Shown: positions 5,239 through 35,802 of the stretch, one piece after another
How the letters are laid out: every line of letters starts with the position of its first letter
Numbering within the stretch: position 1 is the stretch's first letter
Notes under the pieces: generated by a model
What the model saw: only the letters and a program-made list of their open reading frames with translations
Told to the model about the DNA's origin: nothing
The model's database searches: none
Program-made: the position numbers and the translations under genes
Origin: Dimorphilus gyrociliatus
Lineage: Eukaryota; Animalia; Annelida
DNA length: 64,000 bases
Assembly (NCBI GenBank): GCA_904063045.1
Contig: CAJFCJ010000023.1
Location: 434,001-498,000 of the forward strand
Reading direction: 5' to 3'

Positions 5239-7524
5239 GTAAGTCAATGTTTCCCTTATCAAAAGCGCTTTTGCTGGTTTTTTTTTGCTGTATTTAAGTT
5301 TTACTTACGAGAACCGCATTATAGTGCGCAGGCGCGCATATCGTCTTTCCTTAATCTATTAAATATTAAAACTAAAAATAGAATTTCAAGTAAAACTATA
5401 AACTAAATAAAGTAAAGAATAAAAAAAGATAATCTATTATCGACCGAGTTTTGCTTAACTATTTTATCTTAATCATTATAAAAGAAATAGCAGACAATAC
5501 TCTCAAAGTGAGAGCTGTTTTCTTATATAGTAGTTTCATTAGTTTTATTTCTCTTCTCTTCTTCTCTCCCCCTTTCCTTTTTTCTCTTGCCTACTTTTTA
5601 CGAAAAGGAAAAGTCGACCTAAAACACGTCAGACGCTCGTTAGACGCCTTTAATAGGCCTATTCTCTTCCGCTATCCAATTAATCATCGCCGTCCGAACG
5701 GCGAACGGAACGGGCTTGTCAGATATTTAACGTCGCGGAAAAACCGATCGACGTTATTGATGCGTGTGCTTTTAGCTTATATATATATTTATATATATAT
5801 TTATAGTATATTCTTTCTTTTCTTGTTTTTATAGTTTGTACATAGATTGTATACTTTCTATACAGAAATCCGATTAAAGTAGTTATTGTATAAGATATTT
5901 ATGATACTTGTATATTGAATAGTTAAATTACTGATAATGACAGGGAGACTTGACGAAAAAAGGTGAAAAGATGAAGGGAGAATGAGAAAGACAGACGTAT
6001 ACGAGCAGTAAATAGTTTTATAGTTTAGTGTAACAATAAGTAAAGGCACGCAATGATTTGCGGAGCGTATAAATAACAATAGAAAGCAATTTATCGACGA
6101 TTGAATTATTAATAGTACTCAAATCTTATATCGATATGTACAGTGATAATTTGAATAGACGAGTAGTAGGATAACAATCGGGATTTTCTTTGTATCCCTT
6201 ATTAAATATAGAGAATGATTAATTTTGTTGATTGTTATTAATCGAATAGATTAACTTTCCACAAGGTTGACTAGTCTTATGCATTTTCGCTTCGATTCTT
6301 TTCTCTTTTCGGAACATATCCTTATCTTAGTCCTTCCTCTCTTTTTTTTTTTGACTTTCCATTCACGCTATTCGCCATATTTTTCTATGAAACAACGCAA
6401 TTAAGATACATAAATAAACTAAACTAATTCTCGGAAAAAGTTGTAAATGAACCTATGAAGAAACCGATACTTTCTTTGGGGAAATATACCTTATTAGGCA
6501 ATTGTGGTTAAAACTTTAGGATAGGGTTAGCCTTAAGGTGATAATCAAAATAAGATTAAGAATAGAAATGAGAGAAAGATGAAGAAGATGAAGTGGGATA
6601 AGAAGAAGAAGAAGAAGAAAGAAAAAAAGAAGGATGTATAGAAAAGTAGAAATGTAGGAATATTAAGTAGATGATAAAGGAGAAAATAAGGGTTTTGATA
6701 GTAACTGTGACATCGACGATGACGATGCTAATGATAATGACGTGAAGACGTAAATGAAAGAAAAGAAGAAGACAGAGACACAGAAGGAAAGGGGAAAAAA
6801 AGCAACTGCACAGTCTAACAAAGTAAACAGACACATGGTAATTCATTCATTCATTCTCGTTGTCTAGCGCTTAATCAACTGCAAATGACTTTGCAGTAGC
6901 GCTTTAATCCCAAACTCAATTTGTAATCGTTGTTGTTTCGTCTCTCTCACAATAGGAAACCTCAATAGAACTGTGTGAAATCACCAAACAGAGCTTCTTA
7001 AGCACAAAGCTTTAAAGAATGCGAAATGATTAAAAGAGAGAATATACCTATAAACTAGAACATTGTTTCATTGTAAATGAAATTTAAGTAAATTAATAAC
7101 GTAGCGATCAATTACTACGTCATTTTCTCCCTCCTTAAATAAGTTTTCTTTAAGTCAATAAGCCTCCCTCTACTCCCATTTCCCTCCACCCCCTTTGCTC
7201 CTTTTTTATTGTCAAAGAATTGAAGGCAACTAGTTCTACGAGACAAGCGTTTAAACGATTTCCATTCTTATCGGTACAGTGCAGTTGCGCCCGCCCAACC
7301 GCAACATCCTTAATGCAAAATTTCCGTTTACAGATTGGATTGGAACGCTATCTCTCTGCATATTTTTGTAGAATCTAGTTAAGTGCCATTAAGAGAATGT
7401 TAATTAGTCAAGAGAAGACTGTAAAAGAGAAAGAAACAACGCTCAATTAGCGCATGCGTTAATAACTATGTAATTGATTTAGCACAAAAATTATGATTAT
7501 TAATCAGATTTTTTTTTCTCACAG

Positions 7525-8313: not shown

Positions 8314-8666
8314 GTAGCCTTCTCTTCAATCCAATAAACGCTTGGTTGGTCACCAGCTATGGCTGGAGAATTGCTTTTAGAATTGCTGCCGGTCTTATTA
8401 TTGTTACTGGATTACCGTGCTGTTGGGTATTTTCCAGTAAGGATACAATCAACCCAGAAATCTTAAGAGATGAGGAAGAAATAACTCCTAGAACCCCAGA
8501 ACCTCCAGAGCCCGTTGTGGAAGAGGTTGAGGTTGAACAGGAGGCAAAGGTAAAACGGAGGCGTTGCTGCACGCTAGCGGAACTGAAAGAACGGCCGGAA
8601 ATCGCTCTATGGTACATGGGGAATTTGCTAAATTACTTGGGATTCTATATGCCATTCGTAAATTTG
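8314..8666 (+). CDS. SLC16 transporter coding exon 3
   Basis: ggtttacag| then GSLLFNPINAWLVTSYGWRIAFRIAAG (MCT YGWR motif), an acidic central loop, and LNYLGFYMPFVNL|GTAAGT, phase 0. Confidence 0.93.
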
Positions 8667-9008
8667 GTAAGTAAAATATGAATGAAATAAAGAGAAAATT
8701 ATGATTTGGGGATATTCTATAATCTGATGGAACAAATTTTCCAATAAAAAGAAAAGGCAAAACGGAATCTACTGACTATTAATTTTTTTTGAAATATCTC
8801 TGTTACACAGTCGTTTATTTATAGGCTTAAGAATGACAAAGTGTTATCGTTACGACGTTTGTCAGTAGAACTTAATAGGAAACTGGCAAACGAAGAGGAT
8901 AAAAAAAAACTATAAAATAGAAAAAGAGAGAAATAATAGCCTTTTTCTCTACATTGATTTCATTAATTAATCTATTTAGTCGTTTATTCGTTCATTTTTG
9001 TTTTTCAG

Positions 9009-9237
9009 GCGTATTACATGAAGCTTAAAGGAATTGAGGAGACGAGAAGTTCTTGGGCTCTTACTCTGCTCAGTTTATCGGAATGTGTATCTTATATTCT
9101 TGCTTCCTTCTTTGGTGACTATTTAAAAGGCAAACTTGTCTATGCTAATGTCATATCGGCAGCAGCTTTAAGTCTCATTTGTATACTTTGGCCTATGCTA
9201 GACTTTTCTTATTCGATGATACTCTTCACATCACTCA
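9009..9237 (+). CDS. SLC16 transporter coding exon 4
   Basis: tttttcag|GCG TAT TAC ATG...FTSL A|GTAAGT; hydrophobic TM8-10, phases 0 to 1. Confidence 0.9.
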
Positions 9238-9316
9238 GTAAGTACACTTATGTTCCACTTTGTAATTAGACAAAGAAAATAATTGATTTTTCTTCCACTT
9301 GTCTTTTTTCCTCCAG

Positions 9317-9457
9317 CTATGGGAGGCTTTTTAGGTTTGACTATTGTATACACTTACGCCGCTTCCGGTGAAGTTACTAAACTTCCTATCGATGTTGCAT
9401 GGTCGTTTACGAATTTGTGGTCTGGTGTTGGCATACTTTTGGGTCCATTTTTCTCTG
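9317..9457 (+). CDS. SLC16 transporter coding exon 5
   Basis: ttttttcctccag| then TMGGFLGLTIV...GVGILLGPFFS G|GTAAGT, phases 1 to 1. Confidence 0.9.
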
Positions 9458-9577
9458 GTAAGTACAGTAGCTTCGGCATTAAATAATTGAATAACTAGTG
9501 CTGCCTTCTGCTGTTCCAATATAAATATTATACTTTATTTATCTAACGGAAAAGTTAATTGAATTCGTTGAAAATAG

Positions 9578-9903
9578 GAGCTATTTACGACATCCGACGG
9601 AACTACGACGATGTCTTCTACGTAGTTGGAGCCCTATTTGTTCTAGATGCTCTATTATTTGGTGGAATTGTCGTTTTGCAAAAGTGGAGGGAAGCCCATC
9701 CTCCTCCGGAGGCTATACCGCTGGAAAAGAGAAAATTCAGTTCGGTCTCGGAAACTGAAATGGCAGCAACAACAACTACAGCCGAATACGGTAGTATAGA
9801 AAAGCCTGCCGGACCATTAGACGCTCCTAGAAGACCTCCAAGTACCTACAAGTTGAAAGAAGAAGAATCGAATAGAGAGGAAGATTACTTTAGAGTAAAT
9901 TAA
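9578..9903 (+). CDS. SLC16 transporter coding exon 6 (last)
   Basis: aaaatag| then GAIYDIRRNYDDVFYVVGALF (MCT GxLYDxxxxY motif before TM12), tail ends YFRVN-TAA. The acceptor has a weak pyrimidine tract but the phase fits. Confidence 0.88.
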
Positions 9904-11661
9904 TGGAAAGAATGATTTTAGAAGTGTTAAAATGTTAGATGGTTAAGGATTTTAAATTAATTAATTGTAATATATATAAATATATTAAGACTATTAATTA
10001 AAATATTGATATCTGTAAGAAGTAAGGAGATAAAAAGATACAAAAAAAATCATTAGGCTTTCGTTTTTGTTCATAATTGTAAATGTACGAGGAAAAAAAA
10101 AGGAAAAACATGGAATGCTTGTGTTTATTTAAATGAAGGGATGAACATATAAAAGAAAAACAAATAAAAAAGTTTCGTTTCTATCTTATCGACGGATACG
10201 ATTCAAAAAAAAAAACAGAGGAGATCTATAATGAATTTATCATAGTGGATGGGTAATAATCGATCGATTACTGTTTAATTTTATCCATTGTAAATCATGC
10301 GGCTTATCGATTGATTAAACAAATCTATAATGAATCATTTCCCTTTCTCTCCGAGTCTTCCTTTTCCGTTCAAGAAAACTAAGAGCTAGGAACAGAATAA
10401 CAGAGATCGAAATAGACCAACAATATTACATTTATTCTATTTTTCCAATTCGTATCCCATCCGTAAAATACTCCATTCCGATAGTCGTTTCAATGATAAA
10501 ACGTTTCGAGATGACCAACATCAATTTTGTTAATCCGACCATAATCCGCTCTCTTCCCAGCAGCTAAAGCTATTAAGATTATATAATTACGATTGACTGC
10601 ATTATACAATATGTTAAAAAGAGGGAAAAAATGTGTTTATCCCTTCGACTTTAATGCTCTCAACCGTTGAAAATATATTGTAAAAGTCTTATAGCAGTAT
10701 AGTAAAAAATTTAATAAAATATTTGTCAATTCTCCGTTAATTATTTTAATTAATTATCTAATTAGTTAAATATATGACAGGTAATCCTTTCATTCTGTAT
10801 TCATTTCAACCGTTTTTTCGATAACTATTCATCCGAAATTTCAACGATTTTACGCCATCTTGCGGGTTTTAAATAGTTTACCCTAGTGGGCAATAATTGA
10901 AAGTGAAGGAGAGAAAAGGCAACGGAAGAAAACGTTGGAGAGATTGAGCGACGTAGACAGAAAAAAGCGGAAGGGGCTTATTAAAAAATTAAGAAGGAAA
11001 GGAGTTTAATTATGTAAAAAGTTGAGTGATAAATTGAGAAATTTCAATGTGTTTAGATTGAAAAGTATTCGAAAGGCTTGGGGTGTGAACCGTTCCATTA
11101 TTAAATCAATCAATCTATTGATTGAGATCTTATTTAACGATAAGCATCAAGGTAAAGCATCCAGGACAATTTAATAAAATGATTAATAAACTTGTTTATA
11201 TTAGACGATTATTATGTCAATTTTCCAAATTAAACATTTCTCACTTTTCCTACGATAACAGAAGATTTATATATAGAAGGAAAACCAGCTAGTTTATGAC
11301 TAAATAAGAGAGAAAGAGAACAGAGAAAGATTTGAAACAATAAGATAAAAGTTTAGGGAAAACTATCTGCTTGTTTAATCAGTTAAAAAGAGGTCATAGT
11401 GGCAAATCTTAGAGATTGGGCCATGCTCTAGAGTATTAAAAGAATCTATGCACGGAGAAGAATTAATTTTTTAAGAAAAGAGTGACACCTGTAGGCGGAT
11501 AAGTAGGCCTAAATTACAAGCATAAAAGGCGTTGTCCCAAGCAGTAGTGGCGTTATTTTGCGTACGTTGACGGAAAAAGTTTGTTTCATATATTTCCTAA
11601 ACAAACTTAATCGTTGAAAAACGATTCTCTTTTTTTCTTTTTTCAACTGACAGACAAGATT

Positions 11662-11764
11662 ATGAAATCGAATTACGCTCTGTTCGTCACCTTAATCTGC
11701 TGTTGCGTAATTGTTGAACAATTCGCTCAAGAATATTCACCGGACGGTTATAAATTCGACGATG
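11662..11764 (+). CDS. Neuropeptide precursor exon 1: shared signal peptide MKSNYALFVTLICCCVIVEQFA-QEYSPDGYKFDD
   Basis: Basic N-terminus plus hydrophobic core. Preceded by acceptor ttttttcaactgacag (ends 11653). Donor GAT G|GTTTGA is phase 1 and matches both downstream exons. An alternative phase-1 donor at 11747 is possible. Confidence 0.85.
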
Positions 11765-12785
11765 GTTTGATATTTTCCAATTCTTTGTTGTATTGCTTTA
11801 TATTTTCCGGCTTTCACTTCTTTCAAATTACGCTTACGAAAGTACGCTTTTGCAGCTGTCGATTAGACTGTCGCTGACAACATTTGTCCGTTTATGAGCT
11901 TTAGCTTTTTAGCTTAATATCTATCCAATAGAAATATATATATATATATATATATACATATCTTTTTTTATACATAAGTATACGTATTCATAACGCCTAT
12001 GCTTATACATATATGTATACAAAAAAGGATTATATACTACCTATGAAGGGATAATAGTAAAAGAGTTTAATCTCTTTAATTAGCTTCTCAACGATGCTGA
12101 AAAGTATTTAAAAAACAGTCGATTAATCTTAAACAAATTTTCAATTATCAGTTAGATGTAAAAAGATATTCTAATAAGTTGTAATATTAAAATATCAAAT
12201 CATATTCAATCGAATGGAATGAATTAAAAGTCTGCTTGAATTTCAAAAATAATTAACTTTTGAGAAAATAATATACAAACACTGAAAGAAAACAGATAGA
12301 AAGAAAGAAAGAAAGAGAGGTGAAGTTTGTTATTGTTGGATTTAATATCTTTATAAATATAACATATTTAAGTTTTCCCTCTTAACCCTTAAAATATTTC
12401 ATATTTTTCATTCTTTCGTTCCCCTCCCTCTTTTCTATATCTTCCTCCTCTTCTTCCTTCTCCTGTTCAGTCTGTTCTTTGTTATTGCTCCTCCTCTCAC
12501 TTTATTAATGCTATTAAGGCAAGAAAACGTAATTAATCATATTAAGTTTATTCTACTTCGTATTCGACTTAAAAAAGTATACATTTAAGTTGATAGCAAT
12601 CTTTATATAGATCAAATGAGCGAATAAGTGTACATACATATTCATATATGTACTTGTATATATATATTATTCATGATCTACACAGTACATACGTAAGCAT
12701 CTTTCCATTTTCTTAGCAATCTATACTAGCTGGGGAGCAATTTATATTAAAAATGTATGTATAAGTATCTATATATGTATATTTA

Positions 12786-12787
<2 letters not shown>

Positions 12788-12857
<70 letters not shown>
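12788..12857. repeat. (AT)n microsatellite
   Basis: Uninterrupted AT dinucleotide run of about 70 nt in the neuropeptide intron. Similar runs near 27240-27287, 27917-27960 and 62749-62788. Confidence 0.95.
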
Positions 12858-12859
<2 letters not shown>

Positions 12860-13629
12860 TATAAATGTATATGATGTGCATGTATATATATATAGATATA
12901 TATAATTTTGCACACATACATTCATTAAGTACAATAAAGAAAATACACAGTATCTACAATATATGCTGTATATTAATCTATTGTACACAAGAATATATTC
13001 TATTTATGAAAACTGGTTTTTGTTTGGAATCACAACGAATGAAGTTGATCACTGACAAACTCTTTGATATTCATTTATATACATATATATTTATATACAT
13101 ATATATATATATCAACGATATATTTTGCTGTTTGGTTATTGAGATCGATTTCATTCTGCTCTATTTTATAATTTGTTTAACTTAATTTATCTTCAATTTT
13201 ATTTCCACCAGCTAAACCTATACATGTTTGCTTTTCCGCTATTTCTTTTTCATAGTTTTATCTCTTTTCACTTGGCTTTTATAAGAGATAAAATTGAGAT
13301 TGGAATCAGTGGAAAGACTTTATTGTTTTCAAAACCGCTTGCTCTCCTTCATTTTTCATTTTCTTTATTTCGCTGCTTGTATCTCTCTCTCTCTTTCTCT
13401 CTTTTTCTCTTGATCTATCTCTTTAGCTATCTGCTTCTGTAATCGTTCCATGATTAAATTAATAATTTAAAAAGAATAGCGCTAGATAAAATAATAATAA
13501 CAGGCGCGCAGCTTGAACGCCAGACGCGCAAAGTTATCTACCTAACGCCGCGACAGTTGCGTCAGCTGATTATCCGGCTTCAGAGTCGAGGCAAAATAGT
13601 TCGTACGATCGGCAAACGTTCTTTTGCAG

Positions 13630-13781
13630 TCGACAAACGCCGCTTGTTCGTCGGCAAGCGTCCTGATGATTATGCAGAAGATTGGCGAAAGGAAGAGAAG
13701 AGGGCTAGACAAAGGCTATTTGTCGGTCGTAGACGACAGTTATTTGTTGGCAGAAGGAGCGCTGCGGACGACATCCAGTAG
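13630..13781 (+). CDS. FVamide-type neuropeptide exon (RLFVa, ARQRLFVa, (R)QLFVa)
   Basis: cgttcttttgcag| phase 1 gives VDKR-RLFVG-KR-PDDYAEDWRKEEKR-ARQRLFVG-RR-RQLFVG-RR-SAADDIQ-TAG. Three LFV-Gly repeats with dibasic sites. Perfect donor GTGAGT at 13783. Confidence 0.9.
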
Positions 13782-14285
13782 AGTGAGTTTTAGCGAAAAT
13801 TTCTATGTCAAATCATCCTTCTTAACAATGGAAAGGGAAGCGGAGTTTGATACGAGTACTAAATCTTTTTAGCAAATTTGTTATTAGTAAAAAGAAGAGC
13901 AATCTGAAAAGTCTTTATATTAAAAGAGGAGGTTACTCTCACTCATAAATACCTTTTATTAAACATTCATCACACTAAATGGAGACTATTATTAGATTGG
14001 CTTTTCAATTGAATAATTTGTCCACAACTAAGAAGGATGGTTTGACGCGCATTACGGCAGCTTTTTATAATGCGCTGTTCCTTTCTTTCAAAAGCGCTTG
14101 GCATGCGCTTCTATAAATTTATTATATATGAATACACAACAGTATATACTGTATATAAATTAAAGTATATACGCAACTCTACAGATATTATTTTCACTCC
14201 TCTATGCTGTTTACGGCCTAGAGATCATATGTAATAGGTACAACTAATCATGTTCCTTTCGTACTAAACAATTTCATTTCGGCAG

Positions 14286-14440
14286 AAGAAAATCGCCTCT
14301 ACCGCCCAATCCTCAATAGATTCAACAAGCGATTCGATGAATTTCTAGGAAAACGCTTTTCAGAATTTATGGGAAAGAAGAAACGATTTGGTGACTTAAT
14401 GGGCGGTAAAAAACGCTTTTCGGAATTTATGGGTCGTTAA
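14286..14440 (+). CDS. TRH-type (EFLGamide/EFLamide family) neuropeptide exon, not in ORF track
   Basis: atttcatttcggcag| phase 1 gives EENRLYRPILNRFNKR-FDEFLG-KR-FSEFMG-KKKR-FGDLMGG-KKR-FSEFMG-R-TAA. Repeated F-x-E-F-(L/M)-G units with basic cleavage sites. AATAAA at 14512. Confidence 0.9.
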
Positions 14441-16422
14441 TTAACATTGTAAAAATTAACAAGTGTAAAAATAAGTAGAAAGGAAAAATATGAAAAAAAA
14501 ATGTTATGATAAATAAAAGAGAAAATTCTGTTTGTCTTAAACGTTTAGTTAAAAACAAAAGCAATTCAAAAAATTTCTTGTCTGCAAAGAATAAAACTTT
14601 TATTTGTGTGCAATAATTGAAAATAATAACATCAACAAAACAAAGAAATGATAAGGAATCATCTATGTAAAATATGTTTTTATCAATTCACTTTACTTAC
14701 TTATAATATTAATTTTTCGTGTCATGACTATTAAAGAAAATTGAATATTTCTTAGGTTCTTAGCTGCTATATATTCTAATATATAGATTTTTTTTTTTCA
14801 TTAACAAACATAATGCAAAACTTAATGGAAAGCAATTTGTTTTTCAACATGCTTTTCCTTCTTTCTTTTAGTGAAAGCATTTAAAAAAAGTCATCTTCTA
14901 GATATTAAATTTTCTTATAAAAATGACTTTCTTTCCGGTTTTTCGTAACTCTATAAGACAATTCGTAATTAATAATAGGATCATGTGGCAAATATCTTTA
15001 AAGTTATATTAATAGCTGGTTATTAAAACGAGAAAAGAAAACAGTAGACCATCTTGTTATGCATTCCTTAGTCTTGTAAGTTTCTTCTTCTTGTTTTTCT
15101 CTTTCCAGCATTCTTTCGTTTATAGGGAACAATGGATATCGCTCCTCTTTCCCTGCTTCGTAATTGTGGCATATTCATGTTTTAACGCTGTTTACATATA
15201 TTTATTGACCAATTTGAATAGCTATAGAGAGGGTGGGCAGTTATTTATCCTATTATGGCAGATTATACATTATCTACTAATGGTAGTAGCTAAGTGACTT
15301 GGAGAGGAGAAAGAGTGGGAGTAGGATAAAGGAGAAAGAACAAAGAACTTTTATAAAAGAAAAAAGAGAACGCGACGGTGAGAAGGAATTAATTAAGCGA
15401 TCCGCTTTTCCGCTATAGTAAATAAAAAAATAGATAAGAATTATCTTGATAATCGTTTGGCGGAAGCTCGTTACTAGTTCATCCCTAGTAAGCAGTTTTT
15501 CTTATGATAAACATCTATGAATCTGTGTTGTATAAAACTTGAGGATGAAAGAAAATAGAATGTAAATATTTACGTAAGCTGTATATCGCTTGCATTAATT
15601 ATGCATTGAACGGCTGTTAATTTGTGGTGTAAGTATCTGTTTAAGGAAAGGTACAGTGATATTCTTGTCATCTTTTGTCGTTCCCACAGACCTCTACATC
15701 CTATTAGCCATCCAACTTGTTTTCAGGAATTGTTATATTATAGTAGTCGTTAACAAGGACCTCCTTTCTAACTTATTACTCCCAATTGCATTAGGACATA
15801 ACCTATTCCCCCTTTTTGTATGTGATATTATATATTGCCTATATATATATATACTGTACATATATATATATACTGTATATATGTGTACAGTATATATATA
15901 TATATGTGTGTATATATATTTATGTGTACGCATAAATCACTTTGTGCTCTTTTACTCTCTCTCTTTCTCTCTCTCTTTCTCTTCTTGATTTATTCAACAA
16001 AACTGTAAAGAGAAAACGTATGGTACTAAACAGTGAATATATGGGAGATGATTACTTCAATAGAAGAAATAGAAATTATATTATTGCTTGAATGTTTAAG
16101 TATTGAAAAATGTATGAAATCAAAACTGATCGTAACGTAAAGTAGCACGAATGTAAGTATCTGATGAATTATTCCATTAAGCATGACGTTGTTATACAAG
16201 CTAATCGTAGCTTTTAAATTATTAAAAAACATCTAAATATTTATATAGAAAGTTCTCAGAAAGTCTGTTTTATAAAATACAATATCAAAATTATTTTAAA
16301 CACTCATCTAATCAAATATATTGAATTTATCTTGTTAACCAACCTATGTTTTTCTCTCTTTTATTTTTATTGCACTTATTATTTGCTAAGTAGTCGGGAA
16401 GAGGTTGGGAGTTAGAGGTAGG

Positions 16423-32244: not shown

Positions 32245-33049
32245 GCAGACTCCATTATCCAAAACACGAGTGTATTAGCGCGTACGAAGACGAATTGGCC
32301 TTCTTTGGTGTTATTCCAGACATAATCGGCGATTGCTGCTACGAAGACTACCGTGACAGAAAACGAGAAAATTCCGAACGCCTTTTAGATGATAAAGCCT
32401 CCGAAAAGGGTGATATCGACCCAAGCACAAGTGTTCGGGAGAAAATGTGGAGGGCCTTCGAGAACCCGCATACATCCACCTCAGCGCTCGTCTTCTATTA
32501 CGTTACGGGTGTCTTCATTGCTGTATCAGTAATGGCTAACGTAGTCGAAACGATACCTTGTGGTATAATGACGGGAACTAGACGAAAATTACCTTGCGGA
32601 GAAAGATACGAAGTAATCTTCTTCTGTCTCGATACCGCCAGCGTTATGATCTTTACGGCGGAGTATCTTCTAAGACTGTTTGCGGCCCCAAACCGTTGCA
32701 GATTCATGAGAAGCGTTATGTCAATCATTGACGTTGTTGCTATTCTACCCTACTACATAGGCCTTGGCATAACCGATAATAAGGATTTGTCAGGTGCCTT
32801 TGTCACACTCAGGGTTTTCCGAGTGTTTCGCATCTTCAAGTTTTCAAGGCATTCACAAGGATTGAGAATTTTGGGATATACTCTTAAGTCTTGTGCCTCA
32901 GAGTTGGGCTTTTTGCTGTTTTCACTTACGATGGCCATCATCATTTTCGCCACAGTTATGTTCTACGCTGAGAAAAATGTACCTAAGACGAAGTTTACTT
33001 CGATCCCCGAAGCCTTTTGGTATACTATTGTCACTATGACAACCCTTGG
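32245..33049 (+). CDS. Shal: Shal/Kv4 exon 2 (T1 end, S1-S5, pore helix)
   Basis: ctaacag| [22 protein letters not shown]; S4 [25 protein letters not shown]; [13 protein letters not shown]|GTAAGT, phase 2. Confidence 0.98.
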
Positions 33050-34356
33050 GTAAGTCTTTCAGTCTGCTAGTATTCTTCAAAACGTTTTCTTTTCTATCTT
33101 AAACGATTATTAATCCGTCCATTTAGTAGTAAAGCGCCTCCATTTATTCAAATTTAATACAGCAAAGAACTTTCATTAATCTTTAAAGTCCTATTTGTAG
33201 TTTCTTCACGCTTTTGACGTCAGACTTTGAAATTGCCATTCTGACTTTGAGAAATGTTTTTCTTGGGTTTTTCCTCTTCTTTTTTTTATTTATCTTTAAA
33301 TAATTTAAATAGGAGAAAGAAGAGGAAAATTGTAATTTTCTTTTACAATCTTTTTCCCCTTAACGGGTCATGAGAGTAGGTTTGAAAAAATTGAAAAACG
33401 AGACTCAACAGACTAAGAGACACTTTTAAAATAATTTTAATATCGTTTGATCAATATTTTAGCGATTAAAAATTAATAAATTAAAATATTGAAATTGGAC
33501 ATAGTTCAGTAAATACAGTATTACGGCATAGATGTATACATATAGGTTTATAAGCCTTACTGTTATTAATAGTAATCATAGCTCATTTTGATAATAGTAT
33601 TAACTTTTTTTATATATTTTATTTTCATATGCTTCTGTATGCAAACATTCCATTAATATACAATATTATATATTTATTAGACAAGCTTATATAAATGTAG
33701 TGTTATAACACATAGTTTCGATACTGTTTACTGTTGAGAAGGTTATATTTGACTACATGCATGCACATGTTAATAAATATGTATATACACCACACTAATT
33801 CTTCCTGCCTCCATCCCTCCTCACTCTCATTCCTCGCCTTCTCATTCACGTACTAAGCATATACTATATAACTATTTATTTATTTATTGTTGACTAGATT
33901 TATATCGCATAGCTGGCCATAATTTTGTTTATTCATTCATCTATTTGTGTTTTGTACGTCATTTGTCATTTGTGAGATATTGGTTATTATTTATTAGTTT
34001 TTATATTTTATTATTGCTTTTTGTCTCTCTTGAAACAAAACAAAATACTGGACTGGATCTATTTTTAGAAATGAAAAGATAGTAAAACGTAGGAAGGAAG
34101 GGAAAAGTAATACAAGAGAAAGAAGATAAAGACGAGTTAGGTGTAGACGTTGATAATGATGAAAGAAAATATGGAAATGCACCAAAGATTTCAACAGAGT
34201 AGGCGACCAGAAAAGGAAAAAAATCTATTACCTTTTTTATTCATCAATTTTTTTAAATAGAGGAAATTGAAAATAGAAGAATATAATGAAATGCATATTC
34301 AGTCCTTCATTTGTTTTCGGAGACGGAATATCAACGTCATATTACATGTCATTTTC

Positions 34357-34430: not shown

Positions 34431-35639
34431 GACGGGTCGCGTCTTTTTTCAAGTTCTAATATGTGATTGCGTTTAATGAGATTATTTTTGGTCAAATCAA
34501 AGAGGGTGTAAGAAAATATTAGAGAGTGTAGGTTGATCTAGGAGACTAATAATCAGTCAAGGATTATTTGCTTTCATAGTGCCTTTAAGAGAAGATATGA
34601 GGGAAATCCAAAGGGATGAATGGAGATTGAATACAATATAAAATATTAAGAAATTGCTACGTAAAGTAGGCTAATTGTAGTCTTTGAAATGAATATAGTA
34701 CAGGGAAGGAATAAAAAAAATTCTACACGTTACTTGTATTGTAGACTATATATAATGAAATTCTGAGTCTCTATTTATGTATGTATTTGTTTCTTTTTTC
34801 CAGAGAAATTCCACTATATACAGTATATATATATATATATATTATACTTTACTTGTATTTATCATATCTATTAAATCAAAGATTCAATAAAGGGAATTTG
34901 TAGGAAGATTTTGATTATGCATAAGAATAAAACAATACAAACAAGAAAAAAAGCATAGAATACTATATTAAATAAATAATAGAGATAGTTATTAAAAAAA
35001 TTAATATTAGTTAACAGGAAATATATATAAATATATAATATATCAATATATAAATAAGTAAGTAAATAATTATAAAGATAAATGCTCATAAATTAACTAT
35101 ATATGCATAGGTTTGTGCTTTAATATATCAATATTAATTCATATTTCGCTTGCCCCCTCCCCCCTTCCCTCTATTCTCCTACACGACACCCCTTCTCCTT
35201 CCCCTCCTTTCACTCTCCCTCTCTCTCTCTCTCTCACTCACACACACACACACACACATACACACACACAAAGCTTCCTCTAACTCTAATTCTTTCTCTT
35301 TCTTTCTCTCATTCCTAGCCTCCCAATAATTCAAATATCTAAAGAAACTGCTTTTCGCCTAGATGATGATAAGAATTTTTATTCATCGGTGACATCTGTT
35401 TCATAATTAAATAGACCTGAGTCTCGTGCAAACAATTTCTTGTTAATTTTATTTTCGGAGAGCCTACAGGATGAGGGCTCTTAATCTATGATAAAGGTCC
35501 AATTATACGACTTTTAACTATCTCTTAACACTTGCTTTTTGAAAGTAAGAGATAAAAAATAAATGTTCAGACTAGCTAATTTCTTTTTATTATTTTGTCC
35601 AAGTTTTCTTATTTAGTCTTCTTTTTCTTCTTCTTACAG

Positions 35640-35802
35640 ATACGGTGATATGGTGCCGAGTACAATAACTGGCAAGATAGTGGGAGGAGTCTGCTCTTTG
35701 TCAGGCGTTCTCGTTATCGCGCTTCCGGTTCCGGTTATCGTCTCGAATTTCAGTCGAATCTACCACCAAAACCAGCGAGCAGATAAGCGTAAAGCTCAAA
35801 AG
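35640..35802 (+). CDS. Shal: Shal/Kv4 exon 3 (GYG filter, S6)
   Basis: ttcttacag|A TAC GGT GAT completes TTLGYGD; S6 [29 protein letters not shown]|GT. Confidence 0.98.

Follow-up and report, generated by a model that had tools for sequence, protein, structure and literature searches.

The locus analysed here lies in a 64-kb stretch of Dimorphilus gyrociliatus DNA (the whole of which we call the window) and consists of three exons on the forward strand, with a single signal peptide and two sets of putative amidated neuropeptides. Its features are the following:

11522..11527, + strand: TATA-like ATAAAA, a candidate promoter element read from the sequence, about 25 nt upstream of the observed 5' end of the transcript
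11550..11764, + strand: exon 1, 5'UTR and coding part (11662-11764); RNA contigs cover 11550-11764
11765..13629, + strand: intron 1, 1865 nt (1739 nt with the acceptor at 13504), from junctions 11764>13630 and 11764>13504
13504..13629, + strand: 126 nt (42 in-frame codons) optionally added at the 5' side of exon 2, from junction 11764>13504
13630..13782, + strand: exon 2 core, a cassette exon of 153 nt (51 codons) running from phase 1 to phase 1, from sequence and RNA junctions
13779..13781, + strand: TAG stop of the FVamide frame, with 1 nt between it and the junction of exons 2 and 3, and sharing the frame of exon 3
13783..14285, + strand: intron 2, 503 nt, from junction 13782>14286
14286..14616, + strand: exon 3, coding over 14286-14440, the remainder 3'UTR, from the sequence and from the X1 contig, which ends at 14616
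14590..14595, + strand: AATAAA, a polyadenylation signal; the X1 transcript contig ends about 21 nt further on

The coding part of exon 1 runs for 103 nt from the ATG at 11662 to 11764 and ends in phase 1. It encodes a signal peptide with the hydrophobic core ALFVTLICCCVIV (Kyte-Doolittle hydropathy maximum over 10 residues, 3.22), followed by a short spacer. A contig of run X2 begins at 11550, immediately after sequencing-adapter letters. The donor of exon 1 is weak (ATG/GTTTGA), and the acceptor at 13504 is also weak, being A-rich with a pyrimidine fraction of 0.35. Exon 2 has the acceptor ttttgcag and a strong donor (AGA/GTGAGT, the GTGAGT standing at 13783). It carries three LFVG motifs with basic residues on either side, from which (R)LFV-amide, ARQRLFV-amide and QLFV-amide are predicted; the 13504 extension would add a possible IVRTI-amide, read in translation as IVRTIG followed by KR. 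As the length of exon 2 is a multiple of three, its TAG and exon 3 share one frame. That last exon, entered through the acceptor cggcag, starts in phase 1 and ends with a TAA at 14438-14440. Its motifs FDEFLG, FSEFMG (twice) and FGDLMGG are flanked by KR, KKKR or R, and the fourth copy, FGDLMGG, is degenerate; the predicted products are FDEFL-amide, two copies of FSEFM-amide, and FGDLMG-amide. A longer 3'UTR form may exist, as the contig of organism A extends further. Across the six frames of the 64-kb window, FVG[KR][KR] has three matches, all in exon 2, and EF[LM]G[KR] has three, all in exon 3; with each motif confined to its own exon, the pattern is therefore not due to chance.

An earlier note, made from this sequence, had placed exon 1, the LFV exon (13630) and the EFL/EFM exon (14286) in compatible phases, with a TAG and a GTGAGT donor at 13783 closing the LFV exon, and had deduced precursors of 84 and 85 aa. 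We rechecked these statements on open reading frames and phases in the sequence of the 64-kb window and found them correct to the base. The note went on to propose that one signal peptide serves two peptide families, the choice being made by including or skipping exon 2. The RNA data bear this out, since the junctions 11764>13630, 13782>14286 and 11764>14286 are all seen in public RNA contigs, together with a fourth, 11764>13504.

This evidence consists of de Bruijn contigs and unitigs (k=31) assembled from public RNA runs, in which junction unitigs have 29-31 letters on each side by construction and k-mer depth does not equal isoform quantification. Read within that limit, the depth of junction 11764>13630 is 8.1 in run X1, 143 in X2 and X3 and 40.1 in X12, and that of 13782>14286 is 8.1 (X1), 105.8 (X2/X3), 40.1 (X12) and 5.4 (X11). 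Junction 11764>13504 reaches 68 in X2 and X3, and the short inclusion junction at 13630 is deeper than the one at 13504 in every RNA run that shows an inclusion junction. Two independent data sets contain the skip junction 11764>14286, with k-mer depths of 17.1 vs 8.1 for inclusion in X1 and 22.3 vs 40.1 in X12; the rows shown for X2 and X3, a part of the full listing, do not include it. All junctions have GT..AG boundaries except one X12 alignment offset, which is due to a 3-nt shift of the acceptor in that relative. Exon 1 is common to all forms, joined to 13630, 13504 or 14286, and the spliced translations are 84 aa for the inclusion product, 126 aa for the 13504 product and 85 aa for the skip product. 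The splice switch therefore has three forms, not two, and the word 'binary', used in the earlier note, has to be given up in view of the third isoform, which uses the 13504 acceptor to make a long FVamide precursor.

Could the skip junction be an artefact, produced by reverse-transcriptase template switching or by assembly chimerism, with exon 3 being no more than a conserved piece of 3'UTR or a leftover coding exon? The short length of the 60-nt unitigs that support it (29-31 letters per side) and its absence from the rows shown for X2 and X3 would fit such an origin. However, 60 nt is exactly the unitig length expected at k=31 for a real junction between two shared exons, and the boundaries fall precisely at the exon ends with canonical GT..AG dinucleotides. 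Moreover, the junction occurs in two lineages about 5% apart that were sequenced in separate studies, as well as in a published Trinity assembly, in which isoform i7 has the same exon 1-exon 3 join. The notion of exon 3 as a non-coding remnant also meets a coding-type constraint on this exon (intact frame, invariant peptide copies, diverged flanks), which requires translation. We regard an artefact as highly improbable.

In organism A, all five coding differences are synonymous, and the four that fall in exon 2 are all at synonymous third positions; the 3'UTR has about 20 substitutions as well as indels. A more distant relative has an alignable exon 3, with 148 of 155 nt identical (95.5%), but no alignable intron or UTR. 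Selection thus acts on both peptide exons.

A second way of accounting for exon 3 is to treat it as part of an independent gene further downstream, equipped with a promoter and a signal peptide of its own and linked to the FVamide mRNA by read-through transcription. Some lineages may indeed have EFLG genes that lack an FV exon: no FVamide exon was found within 10 kb upstream of L005 and of several five-copy EFLGG loci in other annelid-like contigs (5-10 kb scanned), and therefore either the linked layout is not universal or the introns are longer there. In D. gyrociliatus, however, none of the ORFs that start with an ATG in intron 2 has an N-terminus resembling a signal peptide, and a separate promoter and signal peptide within it was rejected on this ground. 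Exon 3 begins in phase 1 and cannot initiate translation alone, and every RNA contig that reaches its 5' edge continues into exon 1 or exon 2. We hold a separate gene to be extremely improbable, and the two observations that the earlier note had named as fatal to its own proposal, a missing 11764-14286 junction and an independent exon 3 gene, were not made: the junction is present in X1, X12 and Trinity isoform i7, and exon 3 is connected upstream.

Homology searches support the assignment of exon 3 to the EFLG/fulicin type. With phmmer, its translation gave 46 matches at E<=1e-3, 14 of them at E<=1e-10 (best E = 1e-23), all of which are EFLG/fulicin-type repeat precursors, either multi-copy KRFSEF[LIV]GG or KRFSEFVGKR; the clusters of these matches bore no curated or informative names. 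A word-indexed search with the skip-form protein found a single relative, an exon 3 ORF. The copies FDEFLG and FSEFMG (twice) fit the pattern [FY]-x-[ED]-F-[LVIM] followed by Gly and basic sites. The extra Gly of the annelid type (-EFLG-amide) is a different matter: whereas the typical annelid peptide is FSEFLG-amide, with a GG motif, three of the four copies here have a single Gly, giving EFL/EFM-amide as in molluscs and arthropods, and only FGDLMGG has two. The single-Gly copies are a subtype difference, compatible with the wider EFLGa/fulicin/EFLamide family.

For exon 2, a word-indexed search with the long protein returned no homologue at E<=0.01, and its copies RLFV and QLFV have no Pro at position -4 (the mollusc motif being P-x-F-V). 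In other annelid-like contigs, R-M-F-V copies occupy the corresponding place with respect to the EFL exon. The putative family membership of exon 2 is thus based on the motif at the C-terminus, on the name used in the publication and on its conserved placement beside the EFL exon. The same gene layout is found in contigs of other species: in three of them (L006, L010 and L030) an F[VI]amide exon carries a stop of its own and is followed by a phase-1 EFLGG exon, five are inclusion-type transcripts (L011, L013, L014, L016 and L018), and three are transcripts in which the signal peptide is joined directly to EFLGG repeats (L007-L009).

The most serious competitor is stop-codon read-through. The 153 nt of exon 2, with or without the 126 nt of the long form, keep exon 3 in frame behind a single TAG, so that EFL-amides could come mainly from a fused FVamide+EFL precursor translated from the inclusion mRNA, the skip junction being minor noise. 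This is the model proposed for the FVa/EFLGa proneuropeptide of Platynereis dumerilii, where read-through would be neuron-specific (Conzelmann et al. 2013, PMC3890597); no alternative transcripts were found in that species, and EFLGa staining was seen in a subset of FVa neurons (PMC3890597). The link between the two peptide types in Platynereis, which the earlier note had mentioned, is hence correct.

Several observations stand against read-through as the main source. In D. gyrociliatus, the k-mer depth of the skip junction is comparable to or above that of inclusion in two independent data sets. Stop codons are known to be leaky in the contexts CUAG and CARYYA; the bases found here, UAG AAA GAA, match neither. 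Furthermore, L010, L013, L014 and L016 as well as the oyster have the EFL region out of frame, and L006, L011 and L018 have it behind two stops. Read-through is therefore not the conserved route, and skipping is the more general route to EFL peptides. The authors of the genome, moreover, recovered the skip form as a complete isoform in their assembly (PMC7854359). We consider it quite unlikely that read-through is the main source in D. gyrociliatus, where it is formally possible as an additional route.

Such an addition would take the following shape: skipping would serve EFL-only neurons, while low-level read-through would yield a fused FV+EFL precursor from which both ligands are co-released. 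The position of the stop may reflect selection to keep a bifunctional inclusion mRNA out of nonsense-mediated decay (NMD). In all three genomic loci examined, the FV stop lies less than 50 nt from the last junction (1, 46 and 42 nt). The earlier note had argued from the same distance that the inclusion form escapes NMD; its arithmetic holds, with the stop 1 nt before the last junction, but the rule itself comes from vertebrates and may not apply in annelids. On balance, the combination of both routes seems to us unlikely.

We are thus left with exon skipping, and the locus is very probably the FVamide/EFLG-like neuropeptide gene of D. gyrociliatus, orthologous to the annelid FVa/EFLGa gene and to the mollusc MIP/fulicin gene, and producing three mRNAs. 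One promoter and one phase-1 signal-peptide exon would supply all of them. Joining exon 1 to exon 2 at 13630 and then to exon 3 would give the 84-aa FVamide precursor, with the whole of exon 3 as 3'UTR; entering exon 2 at 13504 instead would give the 126-aa long FVamide precursor; and joining exon 1 directly to exon 3 would give the 85-aa precursor, containing only EFL/EFM-amide (fulicin/EFLGa, TRH-type) peptides. Convertase cleavage and amidation would release the peptides predicted above, and signalling would proceed through the TRH-receptor orthologue. Regulated splicing is suggested by the weakness of the exon 1 donor, by the competition between acceptors and by isoform ratios that vary between samples; the choice may be set by cell type, stage or sex. 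As for the means of skipping, an RNA structure that loops out exon 2 was considered and dropped: no inverted repeats able to do so were found in the flanking introns, only (TA)n microsatellites, some of them inside intron 1.

Both precursors have already been published for this species. Supplement 4 of Martin-Duran et al. (PMC7854359) lists an 85-aa 'EFLG-like' and a 126-aa 'FVamide' precursor that are letter-for-letter identical to the translations given here, have identical N-termini and are attributed to isoforms i7 and i1, respectively, of one Trinity gene; the entries are annotated as 'similar to P. dumerilii FV/EFGL'. The earlier note's view that the TRH exon is invisible to annotation is thus too strong, as both precursors figure in this list. 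Exon structure is absent from the list, which uses the words 'on the same transcript' without naming exon skipping, and the 84-aa short FVamide form is likewise missing. Since neither entry carries a DgyrP gene-model id, and protein searches returned no protein encoded in the window, there seems to be no gene model for this locus. Literature searches on the peptide strings yielded nothing useful. The exon map presented here explains the origin of the two published precursors and adds the short form. Its worth lies in annotation and in a tidy example; no new kind of mechanism is involved, the architecture and the mechanism being already known from the oyster and from Capitella.

A common signal-peptide exon with alternative peptide exons, which provide different ligands to different neurons, is familiar from the FMRFamide gene of Lymnaea stagnalis and from vertebrate calcitonin/CGRP. 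In the hemipteran Proh-4/EFLa gene, and in Locusta, a TRH-type EFLa exon lies within the gene of another prohormone and is used through alternative splicing (PMC7294237). The partner peptides of these systems are unrelated and their origins independent; cell-specific splicing has been demonstrated in them, whereas in D. gyrociliatus we infer cell-type control.

[quoted passage not shown] 2021, PMC8398477). The two genes have in common a shared 5' part, the same three isoform classes and a fulicin region placed in the 3'UTR of the inclusion mRNA. They differ in their peptides, since oyster MIPs are PxF[VI]-amides and the fulicins are (F/Y)S(E/D)FL(M)-amides plus a QGEWV-amide, and in frame, the fulicin region being out of frame in the oyster inclusion mRNA and in frame behind one TAG in D. 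gyrociliatus. The oyster peptides were also detected by mass spectrometry (PMC8398477), whereas those of D. gyrociliatus are predicted from the sequence.

Within the annelids, Platynereis and Capitella teleta (FVa/EFLGa gene: Veenstra 2011, as cited in PMC3890597 and PMC8398477) share with D. gyrociliatus an FVamide region with a stop, followed by an EFLG-type region that has neither Met nor signal peptide. Platynereis EFLGa is cited as an activator of the TRH-receptor orthologue (Bauknecht and Jekely 2015, as cited). The skip junction, together with the comparison of frames across species, weakens the read-through model still quoted for Platynereis. Whereas the alternative transcript was not found in that species, in D. 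gyrociliatus the skip transcript is seen directly, so that the junction itself gives direct evidence of exon skipping as the route to TRH-type EFL peptides in an annelid.

The gene comprises three exons on the forward strand, and the coordinates and reading frames that an earlier, sequence-only note had given for it proved exact when exon ends, phases and precursor lengths (84 aa with exon 2 included, 85 aa with exon 2 skipped, by in silico splicing) were re-derived.

Exons of the neuropeptide gene
ATG 11662 to 11764 (+): exon 1, coding part, 103 nt, ending in phase 1; encodes a hydrophobic signal sequence; donor G/GTTTGA
13630-13782 (+): exon 2, 153 nt, acceptor ttttgcag; three LFVG copies with basic residues on either side
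13779-13781 (+): TAG of exon 2, 1 nt ahead of the GTGAGT donor
14286 to TAA 14438-14440 (+): exon 3, acceptor cggcag; FDEFLG, FSEFMG, FGDLMGG and FSEFMG between dibasic sites

The peptide motifs are not due to chance, since across the six reading frames of the 64-kb window FVG[KR][KR] occurs three times, in exon 2 only, and EF[LM]G[KR] three times, in exon 3 only.

Logan contigs from eight public RNA runs were aligned on 11500-14700, where RNA depth was restricted to exons 1, 2 and 3. All three predicted junctions were seen, together with one that had not been foreseen.

Junctions and their k-mer depths (contig-derived, rough only)
11764>13630: 8.1 in X1; 143 in X2 and X3; 40.1 in X12
13782>14286: 8.1 in X1; 105.8 in X2 and X3; 40.1 in X12; 5.4 in X11
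11764>14286 (skip): 17.1 in X1; 22.3 in X12
11764>13504: 68 in X2 and X3

X1, a marine metatranscriptome, has about 99% identity to the window, and X12, labelled organism F, about 95%. The skip junction is a 60-nt unitig, the size that a genuine join of two shared exons should produce at k=31; that it is not among the rows listed for X2 and X3 carries no weight as absence. Use of the acceptor at 13504 adds 42 in-frame codons, among them IVRTIG followed by KR, and because this junction is present in RNA the system has at least three isoforms, and is not the binary switch initially proposed. In X12, exon 3 begins 3 nt earlier (window 14283-14285) with an extra CAG, in inclusion and skip transcripts alike, which is a NAGNAG-type 3-nt acceptor shift that adds one codon and keeps the frame. 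On these rough contig depths the skip:inclusion ratio varies from about 2:1 in X1 to about 1:2 in X12, which is compatible with regulation and also with sampling. Runs X2, X3, X9, X11 and X12, under four organism names (A, D, E and F), share one haplotype (for example 14404 C>T, 13751 C>G), which suggests that RNA-seq libraries of other species contain one dinophilid lineage, as a contaminant or as a co-inhabitant.

The four junctions seen in RNA correspond to one 5' exon, two competing exon 2 acceptors and one exon 3 acceptor. The exon 1 donor (GTTTGA) is weak and the exon 2 donor consensus; the acceptor at 13504 is A-rich (pyrimidine fraction 0.35), and those at 13630 and 14286 have fractions of 0.60 each. 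With this layout the outcome depends on which acceptor joins the weak donor, and this choice could plausibly be set by trans-acting splicing factors. A search for intronic complementarity able to loop out exon 2 found none, and no alternative start encoding a signal peptide is present in intron 2.

With the 50 residues of exon 3 as query, exhaustive phmmer searching matched 46 proteins at E<=1e-3 (best 1e-23), all of them multi-copy KRFSEF[LIV]GG(K/R) precursors or fulicin-type KRFSEFVGKR precursors, many being exon-only ORFs with spurious N-termini. In some of the matches (P0004, P0007; transcripts L007-L009), a true signal peptide is fused straight to the EFLGG repeats. The exon 2 protein had no homologue at E<=0.01 in a protein homologue search, and its putative assignment to FVamide follows from the FV-Gly-basic motif and its position.

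Compared with the organism A lineage, all differences (5/5) within exon 2 and exon 3 coding sequence are at synonymous third positions, while 226 nt of 3'UTR past the TAA have about 20 substitutions and several indels. A more distant relative (loci L001-L004) was reached through the sole word-search match, P0001. There, 148 of the 155 bases of the exon 3 coding part are identical and the acceptor position is unchanged, while the flanking intron and 3'UTR give alignments no better than those of unrelated control DNA; three codons are non-synonymous, all in the degenerate third peptide (FGDLMGG to LGGLLGG), and every FDEFL and FSEFM copy is unchanged. Because coding differences are synonymous or peptides invariant while flanks have diverged, exon 3 is maintained as coding sequence. 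Its first 76 nt (14286-14361, against L001 249-324) show zero differences, synonymous sites included, between saturated flanks; this identity may reflect exonic splicing signals or just the small sample.

Three conserved blocks sit downstream of the gene, L001 being otherwise unalignable in its introns and UTR.

Non-coding blocks conserved in L001
14929-15059 against L001 1092-1225: 75% identical
15430-15690 against L001 1885-2146: 87% identical
16087-16262 against L001 2745-2921: 91% identical

No ORFs were found in these blocks. Within the 15430-15690 block, a core of about 115 nt differs at 1 position and includes the palindrome GCATTAATTATGCAT, which resembles a POU/homeodomain site; this block may act as an enhancer or belong to a long 3'UTR. 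Upstream, the exons of a multi-pass transporter-like gene (8346-9903 (+), MFS/monocarboxylate-transporter-like by eye) stop about 1.6 kb before the neuropeptide gene's transcription start. At 35634-35748 (+), the Rfam model K_chan_RES (potassium-channel RNA editing signal) is matched over its full length (69.6 bits, E = 4e-12). A voltage-gated K+ channel exon (Ion_trans-like; ORF 32295-33053 (+)) is located about 2.6 kb upstream of this match, a candidate hairpin for A-to-I editing of an annelid Kv gene.

Translation of exon 3 from the inclusion mRNA would require read-through of the stop. In Platynereis, the FVa mRNA carries a downstream EFLGa region without Met and without signal peptide; no alternative transcripts were found, and neuron-specific stop-codon read-through was proposed (Conzelmann et al. 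2013, PMC3890597). We compared fetched contigs encoding EFLG-type repeats. In three genomic contigs of other species the EFLGG exon is preceded, in the same orientation, by an F[VI]-amide exon that carries its own stop, and five metatranscriptome contigs (L011, L013, L014, L016, L018) are inclusion-type mRNAs.

F[VI]-amide exons of the genomic contigs
L006: ORF 6198-7127, five x-F-I-G-KR copies, about 2.9 kb upstream of the EFLGG exon
L010: 17 R-M-F-V-G copies, about 1.1 kb upstream of the EFLGG exon
L030: 32 copies

As with D. gyrociliatus exon 3, the acceptor of the EFLGG exon is in phase 1 in both L006 and L010. The EFL region is in frame behind one stop in D. gyrociliatus, the EFLGG region in frame behind two stops in L006 and L011/L018, and the EFL region out of frame with the FV region in L010, L013/L014 and L016; in the oyster, the fulicin region is out of frame with the upstream coding region (PMC8398477). 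Judged from these sequences, the frame relation between FV and EFL coding regions is not conserved, and because it varies between species read-through cannot serve as the general mechanism; exon skipping works in every case compared. On the predicted donors, the FV stop precedes the last junction by 1 nt in D. gyrociliatus, 46 nt in L006 and 42 nt in L010, distances that fit the earlier argument for NMD escape of the inclusion form, by a vertebrate-derived rule that may not hold in annelids. The 5-10 kb upstream of a group of five-copy EFLGG loci, and of L005, contain no FV exon; these lineages may have lost the linkage or may have a longer intron. L006 is a metagenome contig from another species (GC 42%), with its EFLGG exon at 10056-10450 (FSEFLGG and YSEFLGG copies); its FI-amide exon encodes ALKFIG, ARSFIG (twice), SRQFIG and AQLYIG, plus an N-terminal IANGIVRRRPQYIG, and its first peptide is similar to IVRTIG from the long form of D. 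gyrociliatus.

In Martin-Duran et al. (PMC7854359), supplementary file 4 lists TRINITY_GG_9906_c2_g1_i7 as 'EFLG-like' and ..._i1 as 'FVamide', which match, letter for letter, our in silico 85-aa skip form and 126-aa long inclusion form. The identity establishes the organism and means that both products were already published for D. gyrociliatus. Neither entry has a DgyrP gene-model id and no window-encoded protein was returned in protein database searches, so the locus is probably missing from the D. gyrociliatus gene set. The proposal of a splice switch between LFVamide and TRH-type peptides is essentially right but was overstated: the switch is neither binary nor new, and the EFL exon is not invisible. 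Our additions are modest: a map of the exons, a short isoform of 84 aa, evidence at junction level from two lineages, and a comparison of frames across species that speaks against read-through as the general route. Fulicin/EFLGa peptides are taken as TRH orthologues by Realis-Doyelle et al. 2021 (PMC8398477), who described the oyster gene LOC105328755, in which an alternative 3' splice site or the skipping of an exon yields long MIP, short MIP and fulicin precursors, as in Capitella. The gene analyzed here belongs to this known, alternatively spliced type: it is the FVa/EFLGa (MIP/fulicin) gene of D. gyrociliatus.
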